Source of the DNA: Pecten maximus
Lineage: Eukaryota
DNA length: 64,000 nt
Direction of reading: 5' to 3'
NCBI RefSeq assembly: GCF_902652985.1
Contig: NC_047023.1
Location: 7,750,001 to 7,814,000, forward strand
Program-made: the position numbers and the translations under genes
Notes under the pieces: model-generated
What the model was told of the DNA's origin: nothing
What the model saw: only the letters and a program-made list of their open reading frames with translations
Database searches by the model: none
In this document: positions 14,167-61,068 of the stretch, in pieces
Layout: every line of letters starts with the position of its first letter
How positions within the stretch are numbered: the stretch's first letter is position 1

Positions 14167-17100
14167 CTATGATCCTGTGTTCTGTGTATTACCATTATCG
14201 AGAATGTTCGTCACAACGTTGTTCGCCTGCAATAAATGTTTTCTTGCATTAAAGTATTACCAGTCATATATCAAAATATTTCTATTAGATAAAATGATTC
14301 ATATCATCACAGCTTATATTTGCAGCTTAAATCACCACAGCTTATATTACGATCACTATTGATCACTAGTTTTGATGTTACATTGAGAATATGGAACTTT
14401 GCTACATCCGGCATTCATTGCGATTTTAATCAATTACACAATTTGCCAATGATTTTGGCAGACCATTCAAAATGACGCTGTCCTGTTTTGACGTACAATG
14501 TATATACATTTTTATTGAAATCAACAGAAAAGATCGAACGGTTTCTAAAATATATCACATATATCTCACTCCAATCACAAAATATACCAATATTCTTTAC
14601 ATTGTCTAGTTGTATATTGTCACAACTACACGACACAAGACTCCAACACAACTACACGACACAGCAAGTGGAAGTCTACAGACTCCACCACGACTACACA
14701 ACACAAGACTCCAACACAACTACAAGACACAGCAAGTGGTAAGTCTACAGACTCCAACACAACTACACGCAACAAGACTCCAACACAACTACACGACAAA
14801 GCAAGTGGAAAGTCTTCGGACTCCAACACAACTACTCGAAACAACAAGTGGAAAGTCTACAGACTCCGACACAACTACTCGACACAAGACTCCAAAAAAA
14901 CTACACGACACAGCAAGTGGAAAGTCTATAGACTCCAACACAACTACCCGACACTAAAAGTGGAAAGTCTACAGACTCCAACACAACTACTCGACACTAA
15001 AAGTGGAAAGTCTACAGACTCCAAAAAAACTACTCCACACTAAAAGTGGAAGTCTACAGACTCCAACACAACTACACTACACAGCAAGTGGAAGTCTACG
15101 AACTCCAACACAACTACTCGACACAACAAGTGGAAGTCTACAGACTCCAACACAACTACTCGACACAACAAGTGGAAAGTCTACAGACTCCAACACAACT
15201 ACTCGACACTAAAAGTGGAAGGTCTACAGACTCCAACACAACTACACGACACAGCAACTGAAAGTCTACAGACTCCAACACAACTACACGACACAACAAC
15301 TGAAAGTCTACGAACTCCAACACAACTATACAACACAGCAACTTAAAAGCCCAGTCTACGGACATCCACATAAGTATACTTCCAAGATTGCGGGACGGTA
15401 AACTGTACTCAAATTTACAATTATGGAATATTTCCCGTTAACAAAAATGGTTGCTGGATCTCTATTTCTATATGTCCAGATATATAAACCTTTCTTGTTT
15501 TAAGTAACTTCCTTCCTTATTTATCCACTCCATTTTCTCCCGACAATCTTACCCATACGTAGAAGGTTCCAGCGGCTGGACTACATAGCCGAACAGTATC
15601 TTCGTCATGCTTTTGGATCATGGCCTGAACCGTTGACGCGGTACTTTGCGTCACATGCTGCGCTTGCTTTTCAGGGAATTCCTTGACACGACGAATTACG
15701 GATTTGCGTCCAAGGTTCCTTAGTAGAGCCTGTATGTCCTGCCAGTCCTGCGAACGTTGAATGAACGAAACATACAAATATAGGCAGGTAAGCAAAAGTG
15801 TTTAAAGTGTGAAAACGATGACAAAAGAAAATTACACGGAGGTCTTTGTCCCTACTGACAACTTCCTCCATGACTATAAAATACCCGAACATGTTTCATA
15901 TATACTTTTAACAGCGTCCAACAAGATCATTCGTGAACAGAATGATAATACCATGGTGAGAAAAGCATAAGACAGATTAACTCAAAATTGTTGACGTGAT
16001 AAAAAAACAATAAATAGAAAATATATATCGTTTACTCTTATGCAAATGTGTGTGTAAAATGTCTTTTAGTTTTCCGATGGCCGCATTTAAAGTATACATA
16101 GACAATCTATATATCGACTTTCCTGACATATTTTAAATTTACATGATCATCGGAGGTCAAGGTTTTCCCACATATTGTATTGTTTCATTTTGTTTAAATT
16201 GTTGTTACCTGTAGGTGATCCTTTGGTTCACCAAGAAGTGTGAATGTGGCTACCATCACGTCCATTATGGGAGGCTGAGGTATGTGGTAGCTGTGGAGTT
16301 CGGACACAGTCGGCTGCTTCATGGCCAGTATGTCATGTGCGAAGCGGTTCAGTTTGATCAGCTCGTTCCTAACCTGATCTGCCTGGTCAATCTTTGGTGC
16401 TAGCTCGGTTTTAAAATCCGAGTTCTCTGCATTCTCGATAGCAGTGTCTAAAACTTCAAGATGACGTCTGTTGATGGCATCGTTCAGACCTGTCAAACAA
16501 CCACAGAAAAGGAAACATTAAAGAATATCATAATAGCAAGGGGTTAATGTTATTAGCAATTATAGCAAATCCACAAACACAGACACAACTAAGTATATGG
16601 TTTAACTATATAATGGTTTATCAGCTATATAAAATCAATGCGTACCTTTCTGCAAGCTTAGAAAGTTTTTTCTTGTGAGAGCGACATGCAGGTCACCCTT
16701 ATCAGCTAGATTCATTTTCTCGAACTTAGCAATTGACATTGTTAACTTTTCCAAATCCTTTCCAGTGGCTGTTGTTTTCAGATCATCTCTTGTCTTCCTT
16801 TCCGTCACATTCTGTAAACGATAACAAAACCTAATACATACCGTGTATGATACACCTGTACTATCAACATTAACATTGGGTATATCCAGGTCGTGGTAAT
16901 GTGTAAGAACGCCTGCTACGAGTATGTTAATGACACAGCATCGTGGTAGTCATGATCATTACCAAGACATCACATGTACATGTGTGGTATGGTAGTTCAT
17001 CTCTTTACTTGTACAGTCAGGAATACAGGGATTATAGAATTATAGAATAGAATTACGTCATAACCCTTTTAGAACACTAGTTACTGTAAACGTGGTAATT

Positions 17101-20100
17101 TTCGCGGGACGGGCGGGGGTGGTGTTAATTTCGTGATTTCAATGTGTAAATTATACGCTTGGAGGTAATTTTCGCGATCGAATATAGTTTTGAACAGAAA
17201 TCAGTAAGAGTTGCTTCCCATCGATAAGCTAAAATGACCAAGTGTTTGTGACCCGGGAGCTTAGCTATTACCTGTGTATCTGACAAAATGTGAATGCATA
17301 TCATGGGTTTTGTTATTTTTGCGTATGTCGATATGATATGTATATATCAGTCTATTGTCAATACAATTTAGTTTAGCGTACAGTCCTGTATACAACTTTT
17401 ACGTACGTGATTTCAGACGATATCCACATTTTGAATTATATTTTTATAATAATGCTTATCAATATAAACTGACGAATCTAAAGTATTCAGTTGTTTGTAT
17501 CATAATTTGACTTCTGCGGACTTTGTAAATGCTGCCGATATAAACATTAATATAGCCTTTTTACTGTTCATTTAACGTTTTAGAATTAATTTCACGAGCA
17601 GCGCAAATGCACATGCTACAGTTGTAATATATTTAAGTGTCACCAACTGTAACGAAATGTTTGAAAGTATAGATAAACATATATGTCACATACTGTTTTT
17701 ATTTCGAGATTACTAATTGATATCAAAATAATACGCGTGGGGAAATTAACGCAACCAAAATGATTTAACATTTCCCCCTCGCGTAAATTTCCACGTTTGT
17801 AGTAGCTGAGACATGAAGTAAAATATATAATATATATATATATCCTAATGATACCCATATCAACACAGTAAATTTATCTAGGTACAAATGTGTATCCTAC
17901 CTCACGTCTGTTCCTCTTTTTCTTTTGTTCTGGTGTAGGATCGGTCGATATCAAATAATTACACGCGTTACGTTCTGTGTTTGTGTTCTTGTCCTTGGCA
18001 TGAATCTGTAGAGCATACTCTCCTTCGTCAGGAACGCACACTGCCACATTCAATTTTTTGGTCTTTTTGTTAAATTTTTGAGATACATATGACTCGAGTT
18101 CCTCAGTTGAGGTTTCGTTGTGTACAAGAACTGTCCTTACTGAAACAGTTTTCGAACATGTGAAACTGAAGTTAACTTCCTTTCTGGCTGAAGCCATGAC
18201 GATGCCTGTCTTTTGCGATGGTGATGTTAGTCCTGCATTCACCATTTCGTTACTAGGACCCCAACCAATATGACCGACATTCAAGGGAAGAGCTTTCGTG
18301 CCGCCCTCCGTCACTTCATTGCAGAACAGTTTGAAAGCACAAATCCATACACTATATCCTGAATGCTTCTGGGAATGAATTTCCAGCTTATACACGCCAG
18401 TCACAGGACATCTAACGATGAACTTCCATTGTTCAAAATTCCTCTCATTGACCACATACCTATCGAGTTGCATTTCTGATGGCAAGACCGACATGGATTC
18501 TTCATCGTTAAAGAATAATTCGTACGTTAAAAATCCATCCCATTTCTCATCTAATGCCTTGAATCCAATCGCCACTTCGCCGTTTTTAGAATGTAAACGC
18601 GAGTTGTACCCTGACGTAATCTCTACGTCACGTGAGAAGTAGCTCGTGCGTAGTAAAGGAATACTACAGAATTTCTCAAGTGTAAACGGCTTGTCGATGA
18701 ATTGCCATTCTTGATCCAAAGCCATAGCTATATGAACAAAATCTTCAGGGTCGGGCAGGAAGTAGTATTCATTAAGTTGAACAATATCCACACCTGTCGA
18801 TTTCTTTTCTTTCTCCCGAGCTGCATTTCCTGAAACAACACAATTGTCTTAATGTCAATATCAGTGTATTAATTGTAATGTAGTTACTACTAAATTTCGT
18901 ATTGTAGAATTGAAGATCAGCCTTCTATCTTTAAGAAAACCAGAAATAGAAATATAACACAAGGGCCCAATGGGCCCAAATCGCTCACTTGCAATGCAGT
19001 GATCTTTTCATATATGGATCCTGCAGTTATTTGAAAGCATGTACAGGACCAATGTAATGTCTCTCTGCACTTTGGCTTTTCACTAAAAGTCATTTAAAGA
19101 TTTAAGCATACTTGATCGACGTGACCTTGAATGTGAGTCAAGGTCATTCATTTGAACAAACTTGGTAGCCCTTTACCGCAGCATGCTACAGACCCAATAT
19201 CAACTCCCTGGGACTCTTGGTTATTGAGAAGAAGTCGTTTAAAGATTTTAGCCTTTTGACCCCTGTGACCTTGAATGAAAGTCAAGGTAATTCATTTGCA
19301 CAAACTTGGTAGCCCTTCACCCCAGCATGCTACAGGCCAAATATTAGGTCTCTGGGACTGTTGGTTATCGAGAAGAAGTCGTTTAAAGATTTTAGCCTTT
19401 TTGGCCCCTGTGACCTTGAATGAAGGTCAAGGCCATTCATTTGAACAAACTAGGTAGCCCTTTACCCCAGCATGCTACAGACCCAATATCAACTCCCTGG
19501 GACTCTTGGGTATTGAGAAGAAGTCGTTTAAAGATTTTAGCCTTTTTGACCCCCGTGACCTTGAATGAAGGTCAAGGTCATTCATTTGAACAAACTTGGT
19601 AGCCCTTTACCCCAGCATGCTACAGACCCAATATCAACTCCCTGGGACTCTTGTTATTGAGAAGAAGTCGTTTAAAGATTTTAGCCTTTTTGACTCCTGT
19701 GACCTTGAATGAAAGTCAAGGTCATTCATTTGAACAAACTTGGTAGCTCTTTACCCCAGCATGCTACAGGCCAAATATTAGGTCTCTGGGACTCTTGGTT
19801 ATTGAGAAGAAGTCGTTTAAAGATTTTAGCCTTTTTGACTCCTGTGACCTTGAATGAAGGTCAAGGTCATTCATTTGAACAAACTTGGTAGCCCTTTACC
19901 CCAGCATGCTACAGCCCCAATATCAACTCCCTGGGACTCTTGGTTATTGAGAAGAAGTCGTTTAAATATTTTAGCCTTTTTGACTCCTGTGACCTTGAAT
20001 GAAAGTCAAGGTCATTCATTTGAACAAACTTGGTAGCCCTTTACCCCAGCATGCTACAGCCCCAATATCAACTCCCTGGGACTCTTGGTTATTGAGAAGA

Positions 20101-60700: not shown

Positions 60701-61068
60701 TGAAATCTGGTGCACTACTGACAATAGTATATCTATTGTCTGTACCGAAAACATGTAAACAAACATATAACAATTAAAAAACGTGCGTATATACGTAACT
60801 GTAATACCATCTATTGTTTACGGCATATTTTAATTAACGTACTTTCCCATTGATATTTGTTTGTTTATTTCTACAACTTCCCACGTGTTCCCTTACTGAC
60901 TACCAGTATGTATCTTTACAAACATACATTCTCGTCTTTGTAGTTGCTGAAAGCCTCCACATCCAATTTTCCGTCGTCCTCTTTGACCTTTGGCGGGCCA
61001 TCACCGTTAGCTACGGCATCTTTCCCCGCCGGAGTAGAAGCCTCCTCACTTGACGAAGCAGACCCCAT
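57736..61068 (-). CDS. Gene C': near-identical partial copy of gene C (coding exons 1-6), lacking its own MTBD-like exons
   Basis: ATG at 61068 (MGSASSSEEASTPAGKDAVANGDGPPKV); ORFs 60442, 60062, 59456, 58117 and 57731 match gene C with few substitutions (LMY/LLY, QTI/QTV, TKDDMQ/TEDDMP). Confidence 0.7.

Follow-up and report, generated by a model that had tools for sequence, protein, structure and literature searches.

Hillarin-like genes clustered in Pecten maximus encode inactive transglutaminase-like proteins with a predicted homologue of the dynein microtubule-binding domain at their C-terminus

Here, we report on a cluster of KY/hillarin-like genes found between positions 14167 and 61068 of a 64,000-nucleotide stretch of the Pecten maximus genome (contig NC_047023.1 of assembly GCF_902652985.1, forward-strand positions 7,750,001 to 7,814,000; this whole stretch is hereafter called the window, and positions are counted from its first letter), whose products are predicted to end in a homologue of the microtubule-binding domain (MTBD) of dynein. 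The cluster comprises two genes, A and B, and a composite C/D locus, whose exons (E1 to E9) encode a candidate N-myristoylation motif, a transglutaminase-like core with replaced catalytic residues, two Ig-like_KY domains, a helical spacer, and the MTBD-like tail. We give a probability of about one half to the reading that these proteins are membrane-to-microtubule tethers or cortical/ciliary scaffolds, microtubule binding and tethering both being predicted from the domain content. The exons of the window were searched singly, never joined into a spliced protein, and full-length work was carried out on the public models P0030, P0154, P0046, and P0171 and on homologues.

The case for the tail is built on a profile of 27 full-length public homologues searched against the PDB, which retrieved 33 sequences at E ≤ 1. 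Rank 1 went to FAP246 (4.7e-18), whose match covers the core and the beginning of the Ig region, and ranks 2–23 (E ≤ 1e-3) were occupied by 22 dynein-type chains, all matched at tail positions: 19 are named as dynein heavy chain or MTBD (including DHC2), two exceed 4000 aa and bear the name “AAA+ ATPase domain-containing protein,” and one is 6rzb_C, the “MKIAA0325 protein” (149 aa). Over the whole list of 33, the composition is 25 named dyneins, four AAA+ chains, the same “MKIAA0325 protein,” and three non-dynein sequences. The best dynein matches are 6kio_M (4.9e-9) and DNAH2 (3.9e-8). A coiled-coil artefact can be ruled out as the source of these matches, since the alignment to 6kio_M covers globular helices and signature residues, running from the helix that ends the first coiled coil (CC1) through ..E-I-R-S..P.., ..LG.., and W to ..S..G..Y.W... 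The MTBD signature, namely the E and P of the first MTBD helix, LLG, the W that opens exon 8, and S..G..FY.W, is invariant or nearly so across the 27 homologues, which belong to several phyla.

The predicted fold points in the same direction. In the AlphaFold model of P0030, the public “hillarin-like” model of gene A (XP_033751020.1; predicted local distance difference test 89.2), the tail matches the dynein MTBD structures 3err_B (Z 15.9), 8i3j_A (Z 14.4, root-mean-square deviation 2.2 Å over 119 residues), 6l4p_B (Z 13.2, 2.6 Å over 123 residues), and 2rr7 (Z 11.5); these matches came from an unfiltered VIA search, the Foldseek results for the whole model being dominated, after FAP246, by tandem-Ig matches. 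The MTBD-like C-terminus of which a preliminary description of this DNA had spoken can thus be specified, by profile (4.9e-9) and by predicted fold (Z 11.5–15.9), as a true homologue of the dynein MTBD. Two other structures, 9fqr_Xl from bovine sperm doublets (residues 1334–1495) and 9ya2_L from the intraconoidal microtubule of Toxoplasma, resemble residues 540–685 of P0030 with Z of 9.4 and 8.8, respectively, with a residue numbering that does not fit the MTBD of a dynein heavy chain.

Compared with the dynein stalk tip (PF12777 “MT”; 3ERR, 6KIO, 8I3J, 6L4P, and 2RR7), the family shares homologous globular helices, the same predicted fold, and a preceding CC1-like helix, but the return coiled coil (CC2) is absent from the tail, save for a stub at most, and no AAA family is found among the Pfam matches of eight homologues, so that neither a complete stalk nor an AAA+ ring accompanies the domain in proteins of ~750 aa, versus more than 4000 in dynein. 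The chain continues past the last MTBD helix for only 13 residues in C/D and 19 in A, versus ~95 in B, and the helices that precede CC1 form, in the family, a variable spacer of helical repeats. The same segments were traced in a set of 150 best representatives out of 992 matches at E ≤ 1e-3, obtained by querying the whole library with exon 5 in HMMER: 38 of the 150 carry both E7-like and E8-like segments, invariably at the C-terminus.

Ahead of the tail, the transglutaminase-like core gives a weak PF01841 match on single exons (E 0.14), when full-length homologues reach E ≤ 0.1 in 8/8 cases and exceed the 23-bit cut-off in 5/8, and the core of the P0030 model matches TglA (9crn_A) with Z 11.9. 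The catalytic columns were set from C-x-x-aromatic and H-x-W, the catalytic motifs of transglutaminases, and were checked on P0096 and FAP246. In the window genes, the Cys position is occupied by N (A, C) or K (B), the His position by N, and the Asp position by F; in 44 tail-bearing rows, the His column is devoid of any His and the Cys column mostly holds K, R, or N, and the full Cys-His-Asp triad is found in a single row out of 124 (P0096). Because all three catalytic residues are replaced, the core is probably able to bind but not to catalyse, in agreement with the “dead transglutaminase” initially proposed. The core is followed by two Ig-like_KY domains (PF23265, E 3.8e-35 on exon 5 of A and 3.9e-31 on exon 5 of C, both above the 27-bit cut-off, and present in 8/8 homologues), the second of which resembles a filamin-type Ig domain (Z ~9), and then by the helical spacer, of variable length; the N-terminal half of E7 recurs one to five times in homologues, and full-length models reach ~750–830 aa. 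A short conserved polybasic patch made of K/R runs is also observed at the E5/E6 boundary (~54500–54530 in C, ~17901–17930 in A, and ~41954–41990 in B), in a low-confidence linker corresponding to residues 443–452 of the P0030 model.

The closest solved structure to this transglutaminase-like and two-Ig module is FAP246 of Chlamydomonas (7N6G / 7SQC), which matches residues 1–443 of the P0030 model with a VIA Z of 17.4 over 371 residues, a profile E of 4.7e-18, and a Foldseek E of 5.7e-13. FAP246 is presented, in the portion consulted of bioRxiv 10.1101/2021.06.16.448709, as a central-apparatus protein of the C1b projection, homologous to LRGUK-1 and endowed with leucine-rich repeat (LRR) and guanylate-kinase domains. 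This resemblance, together with the fact that many of the MTBD matches are axonemal dyneins, could be taken to mean that the window proteins are internal structural components of axonemes or cilia like FAP246, docked by their tail, the initial Met-Gly then serving for ciliary targeting rather than for stable membrane tethering. We regard this as very unlikely, as LRR and guanylate-kinase domains are not among the Pfam matches of the eight family homologues, and as two proteins may resemble each other in the structure of one module without sharing a location. In the aligned segment, FAP246 keeps the His and Asp where the window genes have N and F. Among the settings initially suggested for these proteins (cilia, sperm, neurons, or cytokinesis), the only pointer to a tissue is FAP246 itself, through the ciliary central apparatus.

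At the other end of the proteins, the N-terminus reads MGGSPSK in B and MGSASSS in C and D. The N-myristoylation consensus consists of Met-Gly followed by a small residue at position 3 and Ser or Thr at position 6, and a Cys at position 3 allows palmitoylation. B and C/D both carry this motif at their true N-terminus; in C/D, the reading frame of the spliced 5′ untranslated region (5′UTR) has a stop 16 codons ahead of the ATG and no other ATG in between, which makes this ATG the earliest start in frame. Among the 38 tail-bearing representatives, 23 start with MG, with Ser at position 6 in 22 and Thr in one, and Cys3 is found in 10; an MG start is also found in 8/8 further mollusc homologues. 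The stretch that follows MGxxxS is rich in Pro and Lys and disordered. The myristoyl-anchor motif of the preliminary description is therefore well placed and conserved, and these sequences suggest that the N-termini of the family proteins are lipidated.

In the mechanism that we propose, the lipidated N-terminus would sit in the membrane, the dead transglutaminase/Ig module would recruit partner proteins, and the MTBD-like tip would bind the microtubule lattice constitutively, without ATP control, since no ATPase is present to shift the registry of a stalk; the whole protein would then be a fixed-length membrane–microtubule tether or a cortical/ciliary scaffold. For partner recruitment, the precedent is the fungal cytokinesis protein Cyk3, whose inactive transglutaminase-like domain works, according to the consulted part of PMC3718969, by binding Rho1-GDP at the cell cortex; the likeness to the window proteins lies in the non-catalytic domain and is a functional analogy only, the architecture being different. 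The domain combination suggests, and does not prove, microtubule–membrane tethering.

Several observations weigh against this proposal. Pfam searches on single exons E7 and E8 returned no dynein family, and profiles made from the three A/B/C sequences of each exon and searched against the PDB gave a dynein chain at E 0.87 only for E7 and unrelated weak matches for E8, the 27-homologue profile being the only one to reach significance. In all eight homologues scanned, PF12777 stays below its curated cut-off, one of them reaching E 0.005 with 16.3 versus 24 bits, which is why the tail is absent from public names; one homologue, P0180, has a precomputed PF12777 match. The net charge of the MTBD-like core is mildly basic across 38 homologues (median +2.5, range −3 to +12), and some basic positions of the yeast dynein alignment appear absent from B and C on visual reading, without a formal test. 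Lastly, the affinity of the dynein MTBD depends on the registry between CC1 and CC2; with CC2 reduced to a stub, weak binding could be the permanent state of the tail, or the tail could serve for another ligand.

These points lend themselves to an alternative, in which the MTBD-like domain no longer binds microtubules and the proteins are membrane or cortex scaffolds acting through their dead transglutaminase/Ig module, as is supposed of KY, Hillarin, LTD-1, and Cyk3, the tail being a re-used helical interaction module. The lack of CC2 and of a motor and the weakly basic charge of the core speak for it, as does what the consulted part of PMC3718969 says of catalytically inactive transglutaminase-like proteins, which bind partners such as Rho1 and act at the cleavage furrow. 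We nevertheless hold this alternative to be unlikely, given that the MTBD signature positions are (nearly) invariant across the 27 homologues, as would fit a retained function of the fold, and that the sequence and fold matches are specific to MTBDs.

From an evolutionary perspective, the MTBD-tailed architecture is old: according to 20 look-ups of representatives, it is found in scallops, oysters, other bivalves, and gastropods, in the brachiopod Lingula, in the annelid Owenia, and in three Branchiostoma species (amphioxus), vertebrates, arthropods, echinoderms, and cnidarians lying outside this survey. The “lineage-expanded” set initially proposed hence stands in part only, the architecture reaching well beyond one lineage, but E8-type exons of equal extents being present at 16 places of the 918-Mb Pecten assembly. 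Word-index protein searches (12 and 19 matches) returned molluscs only, plus one bacterial transglutaminase-domain protein, and have little bearing on the range; from the ESM Atlas came no lead of 0.9 or more. One may imagine that an ancient bilaterian family of lipid-anchored pseudo-transglutaminases captured a dynein MTBD without the stalk return or the motor, and that its members form passive, fixed-length membrane–microtubule bridges, for instance between the ciliary membrane and the axoneme, a specific scenario that we consider rather doubtful at this stage.

The genes themselves are already annotated, under such public names as “hillarin-like,” “kyphoscoliosis peptidase,” and “ltd-1-like,” and the family is known as “hillarin-like.” With the KY/Hillarin/LTD-1 family, the window proteins share the succession of a transglutaminase-like core and Ig-like_KY domains (PF01841 + PF23265), from which they depart by their replaced catalytic triad, their MGxxxS start, and, presumably, their C-terminal dynein-MTBD homologue. 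As regards LTD-1, no LIM family is found among the Pfam matches at E ≤ 0.1 in eight homologues, a statement that involves no direct comparison with LTD-1 or Hillarin. The literature that we searched holds no description of a dynein-like MTBD in kyphoscoliosis peptidase/hillarin-like proteins, although subscription papers and InterPro may record it; the fusion of a dynein MTBD homologue, a pseudo-transglutaminase scaffold, and an acylation signal thus appears undescribed in that literature. Two leads were set aside: work on TTLL11 that speaks of “MTBD-like” and dynein, judged unrelated on the parts consulted, and an oyster microarray paper with a single mention of kyphoscoliosis peptidase, irrelevant to the tail.

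At the genomic level, the minus strand carries every exon of the family, in a head-to-tail arrangement, as established by the listing of open reading frames (ORFs), by tblastn of the exon ORFs, and by a scan of six-frame pieces with a family hidden Markov model (HMM). Exon boundaries fall at equal profile positions across copies (E2 at 22/24–64/66, E3 at 60/62–136/137, E4 at 135/136–196/204, E5 at 203/208–505/511, E6 at 504/506–558/560, E7 at 558/561–652/654, and E8 at 653/655–717/724); the splice phases of E7 and E8 agree among A, B, and C, with a phase-1 acceptor of E7 at the identical alignment column, a phase-0 donor of E7, and an E8 that opens with [DE]W and closes with W, followed by GTAAG or GTAAC. 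Protein identity among A, B, and C is 28–42% in the big exon 5, 32–36% in E7, and 37–52% in E8. These paralogues are thus old, for they are only 28–42% identical to each other in exon 5, when the Argopecten orthologues of A, B, and C are 80–90% identical to their Pecten counterparts. By contrast, the C unit (53969–57621) and the D unit (57617–61277) are 98.6% identical, so that the orientation, the shared exon boundaries, and the coexistence of old duplications with a very recent one all turn out as first described. The inventory does not: at least three full-architecture paralogs, a partial copy, and a pseudogene had been counted, and we find four family units (A, B, C, and D) within 14167–61068, not five, none of them an orphan partial copy, as will be seen for D.

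Gene A occupies 14167–23873 on the minus strand, with exons 2–9. Its exon 2, Pro-rich (..DGYPLPKPP..), is found at 23766–23873 by the family HMM and is not part of P0030, which begins within exon 3 though exon 2 is present upstream. The transglutaminase-like core follows in exon 3 (first half, with N at the Cys position, 23081–23308; family HMM) and exon 4 (second half, with N at the His and F at the Asp position, 22735–22953; tblastn and family HMM), then come the two Ig-like_KY domains in exon 5 (17901–18833, identified by the PF23265 match given above). The helical spacer of exon 6 (16644–16817), the CC1-like helical segment and first MTBD helices of exon 7 (16209–16489), and the second half of the MTBD-like domain in exon 8 (15553–15747, starting with DW, ending with W, and followed by the donor GTAAGA) were all placed by the family HMM and P0030 mapping. 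Exon 9 contributes 19 codons and a stop (14167–14226), residues 669–687 of P0030 mapping exactly to 14170–14226; P0030 and gene A are 100% identical over exons 5, 8, and 9. Tandem arrays lie in the intron between exons 4 and 5 (145-bp units, 19075–21258) as well as below the gene and in its last intron (42–44-bp units, 12594–15371).

Exon 1 of gene A was not found, either among the MGxxx[STAGCN] open frames of 23874–26099 or with the first 100 residues of two orthologues; orthologues of gene A begin with MGCGSSS. The region beyond holds two assembly gaps between genes A and B, of 153 N (26100–26252) and 235 N (34369–34603). Around both gaps, between exon 2 of A and exon 9 of B, extends a block of ~9 kb (~25,960–34,900) in which, through most of its length, 46–81% of bases lie in runs of at least three, versus a window median of 21%, with a 16-bp tandem array at 30753–32471 in its middle. 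The block has the look of gap filling that was left unpolished or stuttered, not that of real genome, and the missing exon 1 could be hidden or lost in it. The family-HMM scan mapped no family exon in the block, so no mapped reading frame crosses a gap. Farther on, but still between A and B, 28-bp tandem units with strong GC skew span 35907–37813.

Gene B (38920–45486, minus strand) has nine exons. Exon 1, starting with MGGSPSKS, lies at 45337–45486 (ORF and tblastn of P0170, the intact 830-aa Argopecten orthologue) and exon 2 at 44960–45082 (tblastn of P0170); the family HMM and tblastn of P0170 both place exon 3 (44263–44490), exon 4 (43343–43549), and exon 6 (40988–41161). Exon 5, with its two Ig-like_KY domains, covers 41954–42857 (ORFs, tblastn, and family HMM), exon 7 covers 40127–40408 (tblastn of P0170), exon 8, carrying the second half of the MTBD-like domain, covers 39534–39719 (family HMM), and exon 9, which encodes the ~95-aa C-terminal extension, covers 38920–39216 (tblastn of P0170 and ORF).

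Relative to P0170, gene B is interrupted by two ±1 frameshifts, one at ~42.43 kb in exon 5 and one near the 3′ end of exon 7 (~40.15 kb), where the conserved phase-0 donor is reached only in the shifted frame; public annotation splits the gene at the first of these, into the models P0046 / P0171 of 382 aa + 252 aa. The sequence is compatible with either a young pseudogene or assembly indels. That the gene is intact in the animal and the shifts are errors of the assembly has, in our view, only slightly less than an even chance: exon by exon and apart from the shifts, protein identity with P0170 is 81–94% (59% in exon 9), no further stops were seen in exons 1–8, the shifted frame retains the canonical donor of E7, and low-quality sequence is clear elsewhere in the window. 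Genuine decay is favored, on the other hand, by the occurrence of two independent shifts in a single gene and by a public annotation that gives it as two models, uncorrected.

The C/D locus, at 50.3–62.3 kb on the minus strand, is organised differently, with one 5′UTR exon, two near-identical cassettes of exons 1–6, and single exons 7–9. The 5′UTR exon (~62188–62334, 5′ end undefined) is spliced to exon 1, as the loose end of a spliced contig at 57426 maps to 62190–62219. Cassette D spans 57737–61080, with E1 at 60928–61080 (ATG at 61068), E2 at 60466–60582, E3 at 60065–60292, E4 at 59477–59665, E5 at 58150–59043, and E6 at 57737–57940; it is a 98.6% copy of C and is the cassette used by P0154, as seen from alignment and model mapping. 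Cassette C, whose exons are all open, spans 54089–57424, with E1 at 57272–57424 (ATG at 57412, MGSASSS), E2 at 56814–56930, E3 at 56414–56640, E4 at 55831–56018, E5 at 54503–55398, and E6 at 54089–54293, and is documented by spliced contigs with GT..AG joints and by translations. Below it lie the single-copy exon 7 (53504–53775, CC1-like helix and first MTBD helices, delimited by spliced-contig joints), the single-copy exon 8 (51632–51817, second half of the MTBD-like domain, with the joint 51816>53503 in X1 and X2), and exon 9, whose coding part consists of 13 codons and a stop (50311–50352, a loose contig end mapping to 50322–50351) and from which the 3′UTR continues downstream. Tandem units of 26 bp lie just below the stop codon (49212–50161), and an array of 44-bp units in intron 8/9 (50823–51651) overlaps the 3′ end of exon 8.

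Cassette D, first described as an orphan partial copy, is on the contrary well integrated in the locus: the sole 5′UTR exon found sits upstream of D, and P0154 (“hillarin-like isoform X2,” 757 aa) maps exactly to exons 1–6 of D followed by the single exons 7–9 below C, exons E1–E9 of the locus summing to 757 codons, the length of P0154. The acceptor and the 12–14 nt before the ATG are identical in C and D (57413–57440 vs. 61069–61096), from which it follows that exon 1 of C keeps a usable acceptor; frame arithmetic indicates that exon 6 of D joined to exon 1 of C would keep the frame, a joint that is absent among those listed.

Expression, the absence of which would have counted against the functional proposal, is observed here. 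Parts of 51500–57450 are contained in 8/24 sequencing runs, X1–X4 holding 0.37–0.42 of its words, about the exonic share, and spliced contigs were obtained from three studies (2202 nt in X1, 2004 nt in X2, and 618 nt in X5 and X7), with eight joints in total, each of them GT..AG on the minus strand and seven of them constitutive. No retrocopy of the C/D gene is visible in the assembly, where E8 has one match only at C's level. The eight canonical joints and the lack of a retrocopy speak for the contigs being transcripts, and the C/D locus is thus expressed and spliced, which rules out annotation noise. Two points temper this evidence, the runs being typed as RNA only by guess and reads having been assembled on the C/D locus alone. 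The eighth joint, from 51816 to 52793 (skipping 976), is an alternative one seen in X1 only, at low depth, and an alternative exon between exons 7 and 8 is possible.

The C and D units, whose 98.6% identity is measured over 3663 columns, differ by 39 substitutions and 6 indels. Such a divergence would be expected for alleles of a very heterozygous bivalve, and it raises the question of whether two haplotypes of one exon 1–6 block were assembled in series rather than duplicated in tandem, a possibility that we take seriously while leaning toward the duplication. Besides the allele-like divergence over 3.65 kb, it would account for the finding of one 5′UTR exon and one set of exons 7–9 for two cassettes, and it finds a parallel in another clean tandem pair, similar in identity, elsewhere in the window (5178–9078 / 9080–12965, 98.9% over 3.9 kb, with a relic E3-like exon in each unit). 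The contigs are mosaic, with D letters at no fewer than 9/14 exonic differences and, among the differences listed, none at the other five. This pattern fits the mis-assembly of two haplotypes in series, gene conversion, or, on the side of a true duplication, the merging by an assembler of two expressed, near-identical cassettes. In favor of a true duplication, the C/D junction is continuous and without N, and a search of the whole assembly for a separate single-copy version of it found none.

Around the cluster, further family members and remnants are found. To its left, outside 14167–61068, three relic exons were detected on the minus strand by tblastn and family HMM, one E4-like (4264–4392) and two E3-like (5495–5710 and its near-identical twin 9461–9598), and family exons were looked for in the 20 kb left of the window and not found. 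To the right of the window, E6–E8-like exons at the equivalent of 64334–65766, open in their matched parts and devoid of exons 1–5 of their own, form a tail-only relic between the 5′UTR exon of C/D and the next full gene, G (equivalent 70405–77136); this relic may be either dead or, for G, an alternative 3′ cassette. A further full gene, H (equivalent 91317–96692), corresponds to the public model P0003 and starts with MGAKSSK. Together, the relic exons, the frameshifted gene B, the tail-only relic, and the young cassette duplication fit the birth-and-death mode of evolution initially suggested.

To our knowledge, the dynein MTBD has been treated solely as a part of a motor. If the proposed reading is true, the proteins of this cluster and their homologues would be the first non-motor users of this domain, as far as our literature searches reach, and a conserved non-motor MTBD family would offer a natural “stalk-free” MTBD, in which tubulin binding would operate without a registry set by an ATPase. 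They would also provide a candidate molecular identity for membrane–microtubule links in invertebrates and amphioxus, as well as a definite role for the inactive transglutaminase-like proteins of the KY/hillarin type, which are poorly understood and whose routine “hillarin-like” annotation hides their most informative domain. As for the C/D locus, it offers a small example, within a very heterozygous genome, of how an exon cassette is duplicated or how haplotypes are mis-assembled.

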